Part shown: piece by piece, positions 1 to 64,000 of the stretch
How positions within the stretch are numbered: the first letter of the stretch is position 1
Layout: each line of letters begins with the position of its first letter
Sequence record: PQ464595.1
Direction: 5' to 3' (one strand)
DNA: 64,000 nucleotides
Notes under the pieces: generated by a model
Seen by the model: the letters and a program-made list of their open reading frames with translations, nothing else
The model's database searches: none
What the model was told of the DNA's origin: nothing
Position numbers and translations under genes: made by a program

Positions 1-470
1 GGATTGTACTGTTTAACATTGTGGTTCAGAAGTTGCTGGAAGTCAGTATCAGTACTTAGAATGATGTGTTGATCTTCTGGATGGGTTTGAATCCAACGAG
101 CGATATAGTCATCTGCTTCACATTTAGAAGAACGAAGTAGAGTACTATTAGTTTTCGCATCAACGAAGTCCAAAAAGTCATTAATCATTTCGAACATCAG
201 TTCTGATTCTTCTTTTTCTTCTTGAGTACGTGAACTAGCTTTATCGACACGGTTCTGTTTATAGAATGGGTCATAATCTTTACGCCACGAACGACCTTCC
301 GCACAAAATACGGCATGGTCAGCTTTGAAAAGATCATCCATCTTACGTAAACCGCTAAGGGTGATGTGTAGTGCTAATCCAACTTTAGTCCATATATCGG
401 ATGAACGTGAGGCCACGTTAATAGCACGGTGGAAACAGTTTTGTGTATCCACTAATAGGTATGTTTTCAT
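1..470 (-). CDS. rnh: RNase H / 5'-3' exonuclease (T4 rnh, FEN-like), 5' part; runs off window start; missing from ORF track
   Basis: Hand translation from ATG at 470: [16 protein letters not shown]...[20 protein letters not shown]...[10 protein letters not shown]...[12 protein letters not shown], with the FEN/PolI 5'-nuclease acidic motifs. Confidence 0.9.
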
Positions 471-501
471 TTAAGGAACTCCATTTTCCATAATTTACTT
501 C

Positions 502-530
502 ATTATACCACATTTTCCAAGGTGGTTTCA
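502..530 (-). promoter_or_regulatory. Class A (early/middle-type) promoter TGAAAC-N17-TATAAT, extended -10, upstream of rnh
   Basis: Minus strand TGAAAC CACCTTGGAAAATGTGG TATAAT; one of 7 copies with the same spacing. Confidence 0.8.
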
Positions 531-539
531 CATATGAAA

Positions 540-612
540 TAAATAGTTGCATACAAACATTTTGATTAAATTTTTTACGTTATTAATAGTAACGAAAAGG
601 ATTTGATAAATA
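540..612 (+). promoter_or_regulatory. Two tandem late-type promoters (TAAATA at 540-545 and 607-612)
   Basis: T4 late-like core (TATAAATA) upstream of the 661 gene; leader hairpin GCAGG-TATTAAG-CCTGC at 620-636. Confidence 0.65.
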
Positions 613-660
613 ACATTAAGCAGGTATTAAGCCTGCACCAAATTAACAAGGAGATTTCTA

Positions 661-1221
661 ATGAGTCTTAATTCTTTTGATCGTAACTATGGTATGTCTG
701 CTAATAGTCGCGAATTTTGGGGTGGTGACAATGGTTTCGTAACTGTTGTTGTAACTCTACCTGCTGATGTAGAAATCGGCGTTTCTGCTGTAGCATTCGA
801 TGGTACTGAAGCTGGTGATAATGCCGCTCAAACCGCTCTATCTGCTGCTGAGAAAAACCAATTCATCATCGCTCAAGCTCTTGCTCAACGTGCGGTTCTA
901 GTAACCACTTCTGCGTTGTCAACTGATGTTGATCCTACTGCTGCTGGTTTTGAAACTGTTGGTGGAAACGTAATCGCTTTCGGTTCCGCTGGTACTCTTG
1001 CTGATGGTTCTTTCGGTATTACTTATATCGTTGAACGCCAAGACGTGTTTACCAAACAAGAAGGTAAACCAGGTTCTACTTACGCACTAGTTGTTGATCC
1101 AACTACAGAAATCGCTACCACTCTAGCACAAGCTGGTGTATTCCAGAAGAAAGACGGTACTCCCGCTCTTGCTGCTGCTGTTGGTATCAAAGTGTTCAAA
1201 GCACTTCCAGTACTACTATAA
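661..1221 (+). CDS. Putative abundant virion protein, paralog of 1239..1895
   Basis: SD AAGGAG, late promoter, strongly biased codons (GCT/GGT/CTA); motifs QRAVL, VER..VF.K and C-terminal KV.KA.P.L shared with the next gene. Confidence 0.7.
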   Translation: MSLNSFDRNYGMSANSREFWGGDNGFVTVVVTLPADVEIGVSAVAFDGTEAGDNAAQTALSAAEKNQFIIAQALAQRAVLVTTSALSTDVDPTAAGFETVGGNVIAFGSAGTLADGSFGITYIVERQDVFTKQEGKPGSTYALVVDPTTEIATTLAQAGVFQKKDGTPALAAAVGIKVFKALPVLL

Positions 1222-1238
1222 TTCAAGGAGAATAAAAT

Positions 1239-1895
1239 ATGTTAGAACGTATTAATGGTTTCTCCGAATCTGGAGTACTAGGTTATTTCTATGGTAAGAA
1301 CGCTCTAGTTTCTATCGCTATCGGCGGTGCTTCAAACGTAGTTGTTAAAGTTACTGGTGCTGTGGCATCTTTCGCTGAACTACAACGTTTCCTAAACACT
1401 GAAGATGTTGACGCTATCGTAGAATTCCTAAACGATAAAGGTGTTGTTCGTGTTGATGGTACAGAGTTCGTAGCTGTTTCCCTAGAAGCTGACTATACCG
1501 CTGCTTATGCCGCACAAACTAACGTTAAACGTGTTATCGACATTGTTCAACAACGTGCTGTAGTACTAAGTACTTCTCTAACCGCTCAAGGCGTAGCTGT
1601 TGCTGGTTTCCGTAATGCCCCTTCAGGTGTTACTGCTGCTGCTTCTGTTCCTGCTGCTAACGTTATTACTTTCCTAGTAGAACGTGCGAACGTGTTCGAT
1701 AAAGACCTAGTAACCTTCCAAGGTGTACCAGCTAACCAAATCGACGAAGGCCGTCTACTAATTGATGACCTAACAGGTGTACCAATGCTAACTGCTACTG
1801 GTACTGAAGTAATCCTAGCATCTTCAGCTACTGCTGCTACTGCTGGTAACTTCGCGATTAAAGTTTACAAAGCTATCCCAGCATTGTCAATCTAA
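1239..1895 (+). CDS. Putative abundant virion protein, paralog of 661..1221
   Basis: SD AAGGAG, same codon bias and shared motifs. Confidence 0.7.
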   Translation: MLERINGFSESGVLGYFYGKNALVSIAIGGASNVVVKVTGAVASFAELQRFLNTEDVDAIVEFLNDKGVVRVDGTEFVAVSLEADYTAAYAAQTNVKRVIDIVQQRAVVLSTSLTAQGVAVAGFRNAPSGVTAAASVPAANVITFLVERANVFDKDLVTFQGVPANQIDEGRLLIDDLTGVPMLTATGTEVILASSATAATAGNFAIKVYKAIPALSI

Positions 1896-1907
1896 TAAAT
1901 CCAAACG

Positions 1908-61881: not shown

Positions 61882-61893
61882 TGGAGATAATAT

Positions 61894-62532
61894 ATGATTT
61901 TCGTATCAGTAATTAAAGATGAAAATGACAATTGGAAAATTGTCAAAGTTCTAAGCTCACCGCTAAATGCGGTGGGTAACAAAACCGGTGCAATCTGGCC
62001 TGATATTTCTAAATTAAGTTTAGAAAAACGATTAGATGAAGGTTTTTGGACACAGAATGATGTGTATGAAAATACTGGTGAATTCAAGCAATTCAAAGAA
62101 AAAACTACCACATTTGATGAAGTTAATGGTGTAGTTACTAATACCTACATATATGAATTGATGGATTTAGAAGTAATTAAGACTGATTTAAAAGGTCGTG
62201 TTGATTCTAAACGAGACAATGTATATTTCGGTGGTTTTGAATTCAATGGTAAAACATTCTTTTCAGGTCTAAGCAATCGCAGTAATATTCAACTTATGCT
62301 ACTATCATCTCTAGTAGATGAAGCAAATTTCCCATCAGATTTAGTATGGGATACAGTTGATGGTGAAAGAATCCCAATGGATTTAGCAACCTTCAAACAA
62401 TTTGCTCAAGCACTTGTTGATTTTACTAGAACAATATTCATTAAAACACGTGCTATCAAAGATGCTATCGAAGCTGCTACAGATTACGATTCAATTCGTG
62501 CTGCGGCATCGTGGGATGGTGAAGCTCTATAA
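61894..62532 (+). CDS. DUF4376-like tail fibre assembly protein
   Basis: K.DLK.RVD.KRD...FGGFEFNG.....W.T.DG..I.M......FA.A......F...R.IK.AI. Confidence 0.75.
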   Translation: MIFVSVIKDENDNWKIVKVLSSPLNAVGNKTGAIWPDISKLSLEKRLDEGFWTQNDVYENTGEFKQFKEKTTTFDEVNGVVTNTYIYELMDLEVIKTDLKGRVDSKRDNVYFGGFEFNGKTFFSGLSNRSNIQLMLLSSLVDEANFPSDLVWDTVDGERIPMDLATFKQFAQALVDFTRTIFIKTRAIKDAIEAATDYDSIRAAASWDGEAL

Positions 62533-62536
62533 TATT

Positions 62537-62582
62537 AAAAGCCAGGAAACACCTGGCTTTTTTATTTGTTTTTCGATAAATA
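62537..62582 (+). terminator. Terminator (62537-62563) followed by late-type promoter (core 62577-62582)
   Basis: AAAAGCCAGG-AAACA-CCTGGCTTTT; GATAAATA. Confidence 0.8.
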
Positions 62583-62614
62583 TGTTACTTAAGCAATTTT
62601 AATAAGGAAAATAT

Positions 62615-63367
62615 ATGGCTTCATATGTATTAGTTCAAAAAATCAATGATAATTATACTGTTATAAAATTTCTCCCAATCGGTGAATATCTTACTGCTCC
62701 AAATTCAGGTTATCCAAATATGCGAGTATTGTATGGTGATAAAAATTATCCAGGAGATAATGTTTATGCTGACACTATGGAAACATATGTCTTGAATAGA
62801 ACATCTGCTGGCTTTTGGTTTATGGATTATGTTGAAAGTGGATTGCAAAATATAAATGGTGAAAATCTTGAATTTAGAACGTATTCTCATTCTGAAGATG
62901 AGTTTTTTGAAACTGGAAAATTTAAAAAATTAACAGTAATAAGAACAAATTACAATGTTGACCAAGATTTGGATAGTGTAAAAGAGCAGTTAAAAAATTC
63001 CACATTGTGGAAGAAAGATGAAAAGATCAATGTTCCATACACATTTAAATCTAAAGATAATAAAATTACTTTAGAATTTAATATGAGTAATGACGCTCGT
63101 TATAATATTCGTGATGCATATTATCTACAACAAGATATGAAAACTGCCGATATTTCATTTTTCATAGATAATACTCCAATTCGCTTACCTAAAAAATACA
63201 TCAAAGAGTTATTCATTGAAGTTAACGAATTTGTATACAATATTTTAGTAGAGTACCAACGACAAATTTTGAATATTGAGTCTTCAGACAATATATATGA
63301 TGCTCAAGTGAGTGCTGCTTGGGTATATGAAGGTTTTGAAATACCAGAACGCACTATTGCTAACTGA
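62615..63367 (+). CDS. Divergent DUF4376-like protein
   Basis: Same layout as 61894..62532 (ends in a W-x motif); more AT-rich. Confidence 0.55.
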   Translation: MASYVLVQKINDNYTVIKFLPIGEYLTAPNSGYPNMRVLYGDKNYPGDNVYADTMETYVLNRTSAGFWFMDYVESGLQNINGENLEFRTYSHSEDEFFETGKFKKLTVIRTNYNVDQDLDSVKEQLKNSTLWKKDEKINVPYTFKSKDNKITLEFNMSNDARYNIRDAYYLQQDMKTADISFFIDNTPIRLPKKYIKELFIEVNEFVYNILVEYQRQILNIESSDNIYDAQVSAAWVYEGFEIPERTIAN

Positions 63368-63374
63368 TTAATTT

Positions 63375-63422
63375 AAGGCTGACTTATGTTGGCCTTTTGT
63401 TTTTTGTACCCCATAATAAATA
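63375..63422 (+). terminator. Terminator (63375-63398) followed by late-type promoter (core 63417-63422)
   Basis: AAGGCTGAC-TTAT-GTTGGCCTT-TT; AATAAATA. Confidence 0.7.
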
Positions 63423-63453
63423 CAGGATACAACCATTATCTGAGGAATTTTTA

Positions 63454-64000
63454 ATGAGTGCATATACTATAAAAGGTGCTGAAGGTGTTGTGATAAACAG
63501 TACTTACTTTTTAGAACTACCAAAAGCTCCTACAAAACAAACAACCTACGCTGAACGTGCAGGTATGATTCGTTATAACTCAGAATGGAAAGCATTTGAA
63601 GGTGTAATTGAATTCACAGATGGTTCTCTGAACTATCGTCGTTTCGCTCAACTTGACGAAAACGGTCAACTACAAACTTCCCAATTACCAGATTCCATAA
63701 CAAGTGGTATGCAATGGATTGGTACTTATGCTCCTATTTCTGATGATATTGATCCACCTGTTGACTCTGCGTATACAAAACTTCCCGCTCCAAGTTCTAC
63801 CAATTCTGGTCAGTACTACATTGTTCGTGGGATTTATGACGCTGCTGTAACCCACTTTAGAGCGAATAACCCAACTACTGCTACAGTAACATTCACTCCT
63901 ACAAACCCAAGTTCAGCAGGAAACTGGATTCAAATCAAATATTATATTGATACTGACCCAACAAATACTGCTAATAGAATAGTAGTTGCTGCTTTTGCTC
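63454..64000 (+). CDS. Putative virion/fibre protein, 5' part; runs off window end; missing from ORF track
   Basis: SD GAGGA; hand translation MSAYTIKGAEGVVINSTYFLELPKAP...AGMIRYNSEWKAFEG... stays open to the window edge. Confidence 0.75.
   Translation, partial: MSAYTIKGAEGVVINSTYFLELPKAPTKQTTYAERAGMIRYNSEWKAFEGVIEFTDGSLNYRRFAQLDENGQLQTSQLPDSITSGMQWIGTYAPISDDIDPPVDSAYTKLPAPSSTNSGQYYIVRGIYDAAVTHFRANNPTTATVTFTPTNPSSAGNWIQIKYYIDTDPTNTANRIVVAAFA

Follow-up and report, generated by a model that had tools for sequence, protein, structure and literature searches.

The palindrome AGTACT is hyper-abundant in Erwinia phage Kaldavass and its enterobacterial jumbo-phage relatives

Why does a phage that rids its genome of other palindromes accumulate one of them in great excess? 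AGTACT, the target of ScaI and Eco255I (AGT^ACT), was originally predicted from sequence alone to be highly iterated in the stretch of DNA analysed here. This stretch, referred to as the window, covers 64,000 nucleotides (positions 186001-250000 of PQ464595.1) of the 366.6-kb genome of Erwinia phage Kaldavass. By exact search, the window contained 154 AGTACT sites compared with 21.3 expected at zero order, a density of 2.4/kb where ~0.33/kb is expected at its GC content of 37.9%. The several-fold excess was therefore stronger than originally described (154 against 21-26); the estimated expectation of 0.3 per kb was about right, while the accompanying GC estimate of 36% was too low. The 11 positions listed for 1-5000 were all correct, with a twelfth site at 3718 overlooked, and the count of 14 sites in 33.8-37.0 kb agreed with the exact search. 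The window sites form a dispersed array within a genome-wide set of 1,114 (121 expected), and AGTACT is the top hexamer by raw count in window and genome alike. As had been pointed out, such an excess is paradoxical in a phage, and this genome is purged of 24 further 6-bp palindromes and has no GCGC at all (0). The hyper-abundance of AGTACT in jumbo phages appears to be new to the literature.

An excess of this kind could be produced by composition, codon usage or dipeptide usage, or by copies of a dispersed repeat, as AGT, ACT, GTA and TAC are common codons and Ser, Thr and Gly are abundant in structural proteins. Dinucleotide shuffles of the window gave 26.0±5.1 sites (maximum 40), and 154 was reached in 0 of 100. 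Markov models of orders 0-3 predicted 21, 26, 43 and 68 sites; the order-4 model (M4) predicted 132 of the 154, but this expectation is circular, since AGTACT itself raises the counts of the pentamers AGTAC and GTACT. Shuffling that preserves protein sequence and codon usage, which had been proposed as a refutation test, left the enrichment in place, with 38.2±5.9 sites in the shuffled coding sequences of the window compared with 152 observed; under synonymous shuffles genome-wide, AGTACT ranked first among 4,096 hexamers (z = 58). The excess was also unmatched by near-neighbour hexamers, since the 18 one-mismatch neighbours were found at 0.8-1.5×, most of them above 1. AGTACT is thus strict at all six positions. 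The flanking sequences are unconserved, contrary to what repeat copies would give, and the artefact explanation, to which we attach practically no probability, was refuted by the synonymous shuffles (38±6 against 152; z 58 genome-wide), the excess in three frames and a 13.7× excess in non-coding DNA.

The array and the individual stretches referred to below are as follows; none has a strand.
1-64000: AGTACT array, 154 sites with near-Poisson spacing, without local clustering into elements
1562-1574: pair of sites 7 bp apart (1562, 1569) within a virion structural gene, an example of close packing
11694-13703: largest AGTACT-free gap of both window and genome (2,016 bp), within Poisson expectation
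14016-14021: non-coding site between a scaffold-like gene and a head protease gene (annotation)
21241-21258: AGTACT-AATTAA-AGTACT, pair 12 bp apart at the 3' end of a small ORF and just downstream
33866-36977: densest stretch named in the original prediction, 14 sites in a baseplate-wedge gene (33579-37043, + strand), 4.0/kb

The sites are evenly spread across every gene class, with both strands equal, and had been correctly described as lying in genes of both strands (94 on + and 58 on - in the window). Genome-wide, the coefficient of variation of the spacing was 0.92 and the per-gene dispersion (chi2/df) was 0.92; even mobile HNH/homing genes carried 10 sites compared with 8.2 expected. The largest gap spans the major head protein gene (1,176 bp, 1 site) together with the greater part of the scaffold-like gene next to it (12875-13999). 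A search of the genome found no kb-scale periodicity, no preference for positions relative to, within or between genes, and no motif larger than AGTACT around the sites. Only 2 of the 154 window sites (14016 and 21253) are in annotated non-coding DNA. The non-coding location first given for the hairpins at 21241-21258 and 21385 therefore held for site 21253 alone, as site 21241 is within the last codons of the small annotated ORF and site 21385 is within an annotated ORF of 41 aa. Sites 21241 and 21253 could pair as a weak 6-bp hairpin (MFE -6.7 kcal/mol, z -1.8), and the majority of the 10 distance-12 pairs in the genome are intragenic.

All three reading frames are used, as predicted, with 91 AGT|ACT, 18 xAG-TAC-Txx and 43 xxA-GTA-CTx sites in the window coding sequences, and the observed/expected ratios were similar between frames (4.6, 5.0 and 5.4). 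In DNA without any ORF of at least 60 nt, the density rose to 4.6 sites/kb, 13.7× expectation. The excess is independent of translation: it varies little between reading frames and is larger where the DNA is non-coding. AGTACT is also near saturation, as 58% of the synonymously permissive positions are occupied by it (63%, 47% and 57% by frame), and the protein sequences are bent toward permissive dipeptides: Ser-Thr is used at 1.49× compared with 1.00 for Thr-Ser, Val-Leu at 1.27 compared with 1.00 for Leu-Val, and Gln-Tyr at 1.45 compared with 1.18 for Tyr-Gln. The immediate flanks are mirror-symmetric, with C before and G after the site favoured, and G before and C after disfavoured (G at -1, 6%; C at +1, 9%), followed by weak TT/AA preferences further out. 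The same symmetric preference was seen at the non-coding sites, which indicates recognition of duplex DNA.

The comparison with relatives extended the enrichment beyond Kaldavass. AGTACT is the commonest hexamer in Kaldavass and all its enterobacterial relatives, and six relatives, drawn from four genera (Mimas-, Eneladus-, Asterius- and Alcyoneusvirus), gave z = 12-18, while z was ≤0 in Vibrio 2.275.O, PA5oct (0 sites), Atu_ph07, T4 and E. coli. The enrichment was present in 18 of 18 loci with at least 79% capsid identity and in 0 of 27 more distant loci. The trait is binary, with the Vibrio, Pseudomonas and Agrobacterium relatives, T4 and E. coli either lacking it or avoiding the word, and it had a single origin in enterobacterial RaK2-like jumbo phages, with hosts of the enriched clade belonging to Enterobacterales only. 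Within the clade, the annotated terminal repeat of CBB has 6.4 sites/kb compared with 2.3/kb in the CBB structural region, and in the Kaldavass end homologous to this repeat occupancy was 76% compared with 56% in the core (p 9e-4).

Where the amino acid is conserved, codons inside AGTACT sites were kept more often than the same codons outside (odds ratios of 3.35, 2.37, 2.07, 3.40 and 2.69 in five comparisons; p 3e-4 to 9e-9), and against XbC2 the conserved fraction was 84% for AGTACT sites and 60% for hexamers overall. Individual sites nevertheless turn over: among six phages, just 11 of 284 AGTACT columns were common to all, with density remaining constant. Selection acting at the DNA level appears to hold AGTACT close to saturation; the conservation and saturation fit a drive by biased conversion equally well.

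In the original prediction, the site was linked to a methyltransferase or another modification encoded outside the window. Three DNA methyltransferases (MTases) were indeed found outside the window, a C5 (PF00145), an N6/N4 (PF01555) and a Dam-type enzyme (PF05869), but a tie to AGTACT was not supported. In the paper in which Kaldavass was described, comparison of native and WGA Nanopore data from Kaldavass and Hallingskeid gave GATC and CCWGG, with TGCAT in Kaldavass, and does not mention AGTACT (PMC11780129), which would dominate such an analysis with 1,114 sites. The sites are, according to this analysis, without detectable modification in virions, and the three enzymes are already matched by the three motifs. 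That AGTACT is an iterated palindrome tied to methylation, the proposal made for HIP1, is therefore quite improbable, even though each of the four enriched genera has the Dam-type enzyme, resistance of RaK2 DNA to many restriction enzymes is reported (PMC3622015) and more than 1,000 ScaI-type sites would, if left unprotected, be a weak point. The C5 enzyme is absent from the enriched Eneladusvirus and the N6/N4 enzyme from Asterius- and Alcyoneusvirus, also enriched, and identity among the PF05869 enzymes of different genera is only 43-48%, with those of Lactococcus and Geobacillus phages equally similar. The other users of the site put forward originally, a nucleoid, packaging or recombination protein, are candidates still.

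As the most likely mechanism, though with low confidence, we propose that a symmetric factor restricted to the clade reads densely spaced AGTACT on duplex DNA as a 'self' mark. The phage has ~3 sites per kb (~6 per kb in the terminal-repeat region) compared with ~0.06 per kb for host-type DNA, a contrast based on one 50-kb E. coli sample (3 sites; 11.6 expected), the true host being Erwinia aphidicola, and this difference is why the word could serve as such a mark. A two-fold symmetric (dimeric) factor, encoded by the enriched clade itself, would read the site on double-stranded DNA with the strictness of a restriction enzyme, and protein from infected cells or virions would bind CAGTACTG-containing DNA. 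The number or density of sites would count and their positions would not, and the factor could coat AGTACT-dense phage DNA, protect or organise it, or favour its replication or packaging. Unless it also shields the sites, more than 1,000 unprotected copies would leave the phage very vulnerable to ScaI/Eco255I-type restriction. Nothing ScaI-like was found in ten candidate nuclease or DNA-binding proteins out of ~628 mostly hypothetical proteins, and we know of no precedent for self-marking of phage DNA through how densely an unmodified word occurs.

The main rival to the self-mark reading is biased gene conversion, which has a modest chance of being correct. Here, a bias in mismatch repair or gene conversion, possibly due to a Vsr-like or other context-specific phage nuclease, would resolve heteroduplexes to AGTACT and spread it without function wherever protein constraint permits. 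T4-like phages recombine intensely, the sites show a uniform spread irrespective of position and approach saturation even in mobile genes, and they come without modification, larger motif or periodicity; reduced loss with constant density is equally expected. The highest occupancy also falls in the region homologous to the duplicated terminal repeat of CBB, where intragenomic conversion would be possible in every cycle. However, the presumed substrates, the one-mismatch neighbours, are not depleted (0.8-1.5×), the pressure is strong enough to alter dipeptide usage, an enzyme with strict six-base specificity and symmetric flank preference is needed, and population-level spread requires frequent co-infection by diverged genomes; the known case, VSP repair at CCWGG in E. 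coli, yields modest enrichment only. It is unlikely that the sites are catalytic, i.e. acted on during infection by a phage nuclease, nickase or type II topoisomerase to seed recombination-dependent replication or ease decatenation of the 366-kb genome, and resealed before packaging. The strict hexamer with two-fold symmetric flanks is typical of type II restriction-like enzymes, a benefit scaling with site number fits near saturation, and the phage encodes topoisomerase II, SbcCD-like gp46/47, UvsX/UvsY, ligase, endonuclease VII and several HNH proteins. However, the replication and recombination genes are common to non-enriched relatives such as PA5oct and Vibrio 2.275.O, so they leave the clade restriction unexplained, and cut sites normally disappear through repair from uncut templates. 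For Kaldavass virion DNA, moreover, the Nanopore study reports no nicks or breaks, though it detected them in another phage (PMC11780129).

That the sites exploit or titrate a DNA-binding protein of the host, e.g. the nucleoid-occlusion factor SlmA, is very improbable. AGTACT is contained in the SlmA site (GTGAGTACTCAC) as its core and the enriched clade infects Enterobacterales only, but the phage sites disfavour SlmA flanks (upstream GTG at 5 sites, downstream CAC at 7), just 5 one-mismatch near-SBS 12-mers occur in 366 kb, AGTACT is under-represented in T4 and E. coli itself, and the Vibrio relative is unenriched although Vibrio has SlmA. We give an equally slight chance to an AGUACU motif at the RNA level, as a site for an endoribonuclease or RNA-binding protein or for RNA-RNA pairing. 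A palindrome gives the same RNA word from either transcribed strand, nearly the whole genome is transcribed and many RNA-repair and RNA-binding functions are encoded; however, with 86% of the genes on one strand a motif acting in RNA would not have to be a palindrome, the mirror-symmetric flanks extend to non-coding DNA, and AGTACT has no positional preference in or between genes.

The likeness to HIP1 suggested at the outset holds at the level of the phenomenon: like AGTACT, HIP1 (GCGATCGC) in cyanobacteria is a short perfect palindrome in great excess over nulls that account for composition and codons (Xu, Lawrence & Durand 2018, PMC5861425). Each of the two words is found in every frame as well as between genes, neither shows a role at gene level (peptide, RNA or expression), and the conservation of each exceeds the neutral expectation, so that both are maintained by selection or drive. 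The two words differ in sequence, length (6 bp compared with 8 bp), setting (viral compared with a cellular chromosome) and excess (5-9×, locally up to ~20×, compared with 15-300×), and HIP1 contains known methylation sites, whereas AGTACT has no reported cognate methylation and no kb-scale periodicity was found for it. Chi (GCTGGTGG/RecBCD), DUS/USS and KOPS (FtsK) are likewise short genome-wide 'self' words (~0.2-1 per kb, rare in foreign DNA) for which density outweighs exact position and which are read directly from unmodified DNA; unlike AGTACT, which is palindromic and three to ten times denser, they are asymmetric and orientation-biased with known reader proteins, and none is viral. With the ScaI/Eco255I target, AGTACT shares the word itself and the strict six-base specificity of such enzymes. 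Sister lineages (PA5oct, 0 against 14 expected), T4 and E. coli under-represent it as expected for a restriction target, whereas in the enriched clade the sign is reversed, with the word near saturation and apparently unmethylated. VSP repair (Vsr/Dcm) shows that repair bias can raise a short palindrome-like word, CCWGG in E. coli, without a function of the word, but this effect is modest and T-containing neighbours are depleted, unlike those of AGTACT, for which neither a Vsr-like partner nor a methylase is apparent.

On the self-mark reading, the AGTACT array is the counterpart of the complete lack of GCGC, a word abundant in the host. As their co-occurrence reflects a single evolutionary origin, the excess of one and the loss of the other count as one observation.

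The window matches positions 186001-250000 of the record of Erwinia phage Kaldavass (PQ464595.1) at 100% identity. Kaldavass is a jumbo myovirus related to T4, in the GAP32/CBB/RaK2 group, with a genome of 366,556 bp; the window spans its replication and structural modules, with genes for DNA polymerase, head, portal, baseplate and tail fibres. AGTACT was the top hexamer by raw count in both the window and the whole genome. The window contained 154 copies compared with 21.3 expected from base composition, and dinucleotide shuffles of it yielded 26.0±5.1 copies with a maximum of 40. 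Genome-wide, 1,114 copies were found against 121 expected, which is a 9.2× excess and a density of 3.04/kb. Markov expectations for the window were 21, 26, 43 and 68 at orders 0-3; the maximal-order expectation of 132 was discarded as circular, because its own pentamers are inflated by AGTACT. The site coordinates of the original prediction were correct except for one overlooked site, at 3718.

For the codon-aware null, synonymous codons were shuffled inside each annotated gene, keeping every protein and the per-gene codon usage. The coding sequences of the window carried 152 copies compared with 38.2±5.9 (maximum 57) under this shuffle and 31.3 under a codon permutation null. When all 4,096 hexamers were ranked genome-wide against the codon-aware null, AGTACT came first with z = 58 (1,003 copies against 252), and the runners-up were only words overlapping it, such as CAGTAC and GTACTG. 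The 18 hexamers differing from AGTACT at one position reached only 0.8-1.5× in the same genome-wide comparison. The excess claimed in the original prediction therefore survived codon-preserving shuffling and was not matched by near-neighbour hexamers. A general preference for GTAC was rejected, as AGTACT itself accounted for about 81% of the surplus of GTAC over the codon-aware expectation; GGTACC and CGTACG were both at zero.

The codon-aware excess was almost equal across the three reading frames, with genome-wide counts of 505 against 110.8 for AGT-ACT (4.6×), 154 against 30.6 for xAG-TAC-Txx (5.0×) and 344 against 64.1 for xxA-GTA-CTx (5.4×). Strict non-coding DNA, defined as having no ORF of at least 60 nt in any frame, contained 4.6 AGTACT/kb, 13.7× the expectation. 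The near-equal frames and the non-coding enrichment together indicate a signal of the DNA itself, independent of translation. An artefact of composition, codon usage or dipeptides was rejected on the basis of the synonymous and permutation shuffles, the per-frame expectations, the all-hexamer ranking and the strict non-coding DNA, and we give it a negligible probability.

AGTACT filled 58% of permissive positions, where the protein sequence allows the word by synonymous choice alone (63% for Ser-Thr, 47% for [KQE]-Tyr-[FLSYCW] and 57% for x-Val-Leu). The permissive dipeptides themselves were used to excess when compared with their reversed forms (Ser-Thr 1.49 vs Thr-Ser 1.00, Val-Leu 1.27 vs Leu-Val 1.00, Gln-Tyr 1.45 vs Tyr-Gln 1.18), and AGTACT therefore shapes the proteome.

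The enrichment needed all six positions of the word, and the flanking bases were mirror-symmetric, with C at 44% and G at 6% at -1, G at 39% and C at 9% at +1, and a weak TT/AA preference at ∓3-4. Non-coding sites showed the same flank preference, which therefore belongs to the motif; in coding DNA, CAGTACTG occurred 165 times against 22.8 expected. No wider conserved context was found around AGTACT (at most 0.06 bit beyond ±1, with only the weak signal at ±3-4), so the sites are not repeat copies, and a dispersed repeat or miniature mobile element was rejected.

Site spacing was close to Poisson genome-wide (CV 0.92, largest gap 2,016 bp), without a spectral peak above the Poisson null at the kb scale, and counts per gene were Poisson-uniform (chi2/df 0.92). 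The two strands were alike (3.07 vs 2.93 AGTACT/kb). About 90% of sites were inside genes, and the non-coding ones showed flat distance distributions around gene starts and stops. A promoter, terminator, operator or hairpin role was rejected on this lack of positional preference and of larger context, the hairpin at 21241-21258 being weak. Mobile HNH/homing genes had an average AGTACT density, and the amelioration lag looked for in them was not found. The AGTACT hairpin pair is at 21055-21698 of the window, where four tiny ORFs (41-65 aa) are annotated; the matching stretch is left unannotated in XbC2, CBB, GAP32 and pEa47, and this region may be non-coding or regulatory.

The sole regional feature of the AGTACT distribution was at the left end of the Kaldavass genome:

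Record positions 1-17650 (locus L003): left end of Kaldavass, homologous in inverted order to L020:1-22456 of phage CBB, with the highest AGTACT density and occupancy

The annotated 22.5-kb terminal repeat of CBB had 6.4 AGTACT/kb compared with 2.3/kb in the CBB structural region, and positions 1-17.6 kb of Kaldavass, homologous to this repeat, had 5.2-6.4/kb. In the Kaldavass left end 76% of permissive positions were occupied, compared with 56% of those in the core (p = 9e-4). Kaldavass may carry the corresponding physical terminal repeat in a form collapsed by the assembly.

Conservation was assessed in a 46-kb alignment of Kaldavass with five relatives at 91-65% identity. Kaldavass AGTACT sites were conserved at 84% compared with 60% for average hexamers against XbC2, and at 27% compared with 13% against EJP2. 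With the amino acid held constant, the codons AGT, ACT, GTA and TAC were more often unchanged inside sites than outside them (pooled OR 3.35, 2.37, 2.07, 3.40 and 2.69; p from 3e-4 to 9e-9). Single sites turned over: 284 columns carried AGTACT in one or more of the six genomes, only 11 of them in all six, and each genome still kept 93-110 copies. A strict-parsimony count of gains and losses on three-way conserved outgroup hexamers, which had low power, covered 36-44 ancestral sites and 67-72 one-off windows and gave 0 gains.

In six relatives, each compared over 20-50 kb, AGTACT was the top or a top-five hexamer with a codon-aware z of 12-18:

Mimasvirus: XbC2, CBB and GAP32, enriched
Eneladusvirus: pEa_SNUABM_47, enriched
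Asteriusvirus: EJP2, enriched
Alcyoneusvirus: RaK2, enriched

Vibrio phage 2.275.O showed no AGTACT enrichment (8 vs 13.7 expected), Pseudomonas phage PA5oct had no copy in 41 kb (0 vs 14), and Agrobacterium phage Atu_ph07 (3 vs 13.7) and T4 (6 vs 16.9) were depleted of the word; in sister lineages AGTACT acts like an ordinary avoided restriction site. It was also depleted in a 50-kb sample of E. coli K-12, standing in for the host (3 vs 11.6). Capsid alignment recovered 45 IMG/VR loci of at least 8 kb. All 18 loci with at least 79% capsid identity were AGTACT-enriched (3.2-6.5×) with zero GCGC, and none of the 27 more distant loci had AGTACT enrichment or GCGC loss. The trait is binary and of single origin, and its link to GCGC loss consequently counts as one event.

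GCGC was absent from Kaldavass (0 vs 82 expected in the window, 0 vs 494 in the genome, 0 vs 325 codon-aware), an absence that accompanies AGTACT enrichment in 18 of 18 relatives. Speculatively, a phage nuclease aimed at host GCGC could be behind this purge. Six-base palindromes at zero numbered 26 in the window and 24 of 64 genome-wide; TCGCGA (44 copies) and CACGTG (75) escape the purge. The nearest trait-negative relative, 2.275.O, carries 7-deazaguanine/queuosine-type biosynthesis genes adjoining its structural module (QueF-like, QueC-like and GTP cyclohydrolase I, at L015:36966-40999), and their presence without AGTACT enrichment or GCGC loss suggests a different anti-restriction strategy in this phage.

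A link to a methyltransferase or a modification, put forward in the original prediction, is unlikely on the published methylome and the distribution of the enzymes. The genome does encode three DNA methyltransferases, all outside the window: a C5-cytosine enzyme (PF00145), an N6/N4 enzyme (PF01555) and a Dam-type enzyme (PF05869). The C5 enzyme is missing from Eneladusvirus and the N6/N4 enzyme is limited to Mimasvirus and Eneladusvirus, so neither follows the trait. The Dam-type enzyme was the only one found in all four genera (43-48% identity between genera) and does follow the trait, but it belongs to a common orphan family, GATC methylation has already been assigned, and it is equally similar to Lactococcus and Geobacillus phage enzymes. 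Nanopore comparison of native and whole-genome-amplified Kaldavass DNA identified 6mA at GATC and 5mC at CCWGG, together with a modification of unassigned type at TGCAT, and AGTACT is absent from the motifs named (PMC11780129). With 1,114 sites, a modification at AGTACT would dominate such an analysis, and one that has been missed so far is very unlikely. As it is enriched and no modification of it has been reported, AGTACT is not a restriction-modification target under avoidance or protection. A Pfam scan of 10 nuclease and DNA-binding candidates, out of about 628 proteins, found no ScaI-like domain. Kaldavass and XbC2 alone strongly deplete TGCA (61 vs 221 in the window; 352 vs 1,228 codon-aware in the genome), which is undepleted in CBB, GAP32, pEa47, EJP2 and RaK2; this avoidance makes an odd pairing with the TGCAT modification reported for Kaldavass (PMC11780129).

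The symmetry and the strict hexamer point to recognition by a dimeric protein with restriction-enzyme-like specificity, and saturation without regard to position suggests that the function would rest on how many sites there are or how dense they are. At the duplex level AGTACT is strict, symmetric, without a reported modification and near saturation throughout the genome, with its peak in the terminal-repeat region. Four genera maintain the word despite the turnover of single sites, and host-type DNA, as known from the 50-kb E. coli K-12 sample, has it about 50-fold less often. We tentatively favour a putative clade-specific reader protein that would use the AGTACT array as a 'self' mark. Such a mark could serve the coating, protection or organisation of phage DNA, or its preferential replication or packaging. 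If such a reader exists, it would represent a novel mode of marking or organising a viral genome. The main rival, a drive by biased conversion during repair, is rather unlikely in our judgement. It fits the uniform distribution, the saturation that extends even to mobile genes and the maximum reached in the duplicated terminal repeat, but is weakened by the undepleted one-off neighbours of AGTACT and by there being no suitable enzyme known. Such a drive, if real, would be the most powerful example known of biased conversion moulding both the genome and the proteome of a virus. An origin from GCGC through double deamination of m5C, yielding GTAC, was rejected, as the 494 GCGC and 47 AGCGCT expected compare with a surplus of about 1,000 AGTACT, and it also fails to account for the present synonymous constraint.

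Use of AGTACT as catalytic processing sites is improbable. Exploitation of a host factor is highly improbable. The E. coli SlmA site, GTGAGTACTCAC, has an AGTACT core with GTG...CAC flanks, and SlmA recruitment was rejected because the phage sites avoid these flanks (G at 6% at -1, C at 9% at +1), GTG being upstream of only 5 of the 1,114 sites and CAC downstream of 7. An RNA motif, AGUACU, acting in phage transcripts has equally little probability. Returning to the putative reader, it is conceivable, if doubtful, that a sequence-density code of AGTACT saturation and GCGC purge separates own unmodified DNA from host DNA in Enterobacterales RaK2-like jumbo phages. GCGC is abundant in the host, and the AGTACT/GCGC contrast would be exploited by a dimeric reader specific to the clade, perhaps together with a nuclease directed at GCGC. 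This would do what hydroxymethylcytosine does for T4, but in ordinary bases, and, if true, would make AGTACT the first 'self' word to be reported from a virus.

The closest known phenomenon to the AGTACT array is cyanobacterial HIP1 (PMC5861425), and the HIP1 likeness noted in the original prediction was borne out. Both are short perfect palindromes far above composition or codon expectation (9.2× and codon-aware z 58 for AGTACT), both occur in all frames (4.6×, 5.0×, 5.4×) and strict non-coding DNA (13.7×), and both are conserved beyond neutral expectation (OR 2.1-3.4; 84% vs 60%). The HIP1 excess, at 15-300×, is above that of AGTACT (PMC5861425). Unlike HIP1, which occurs as GCGATCGC or near variants of it in the chromosomes of cyanobacteria, the word here is AGTACT in Enterobacterales phages, lacks long-range periodicity (spacing CV 0.92) and does not overlap a resident methyltransferase target in the published methylome. 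Full-text literature searches returned no paper mentioning AGTACT or ScaI for these phages; the word is not mentioned in the Kaldavass paper (PMC11780129) or in the CBB and RaK2 papers. The density logic resembles that of Chi, DUS and KOPS (3.04/kb in the phage compared with 0.06/kb in the E. coli K-12 sample and 0.12/kb in T4), but AGTACT is palindromic, without orientation bias and without a known reader; no polarity is possible, because the word is a palindrome with mirror-symmetric flanks.

Phages are textbook cases of palindrome avoidance, which this well-studied giant-phage clade (RaK2, 121Q/PBECO4, GAP32, CBB and others) reverses for one restriction-type hexamer. AGTACT is near saturation even at a cost to protein sequence, while almost every other GC-containing palindrome has been eliminated. 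The signal is very large and phylogenetically binary. AGTACT density provides a simple classifier of the clade in metagenomes. Some of these giant phages have been proposed for biocontrol or therapy, and restriction of the ScaI type is expected to block them strongly. Sequence near-identical to window 33000-38900 (78-92% of 31-mers) was present in food, plant, phyllosphere, silage and freshwater metagenomes, in agreement with the wide distribution reported (PMC11780129).

Other word biases were also observed. Genome-wide in coding DNA, the non-palindromic hexamers CCCAGA (0 vs 62 codon-aware), GATGAG (2 vs 72) and GAAGAG (11 vs 94) were nearly eliminated; Type IIS, Type I or Type III systems may target them. 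TATTTA (20 vs 159) and TAAATA (72 vs 189) were depleted inside genes in the genome-wide codon-aware comparison, which is consistent with avoiding spurious T4-like late promoters; ATAAATA has been proposed as a late promoter in CBB (PMC5259590). The E. coli Chi octamer, GCTGGTGG, was enriched genome-wide, with 34 copies over the two strands where composition predicts about 3.5, and 25 on the coding strand where the codon-aware null predicts 9.0±2.1; CTGGTG, TGGTGG and GCTGGT were among the top hexamers of the window. Just outside the window, CDS0441 (record 254564-257342, L002:19564-22342 in the Kaldavass genome) is annotated as an HNH endonuclease and lacks an HNH domain; it is a DUF2201 metallopeptidase and vWA-like protein adjoining the MoxR-like ATPase CDS0442. 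A MoxR-vWA pair was reportedly described for group 2.2 jumbo phages by Iyer et al. 2021, and we take CDS0441 and CDS0442 to be this pair.
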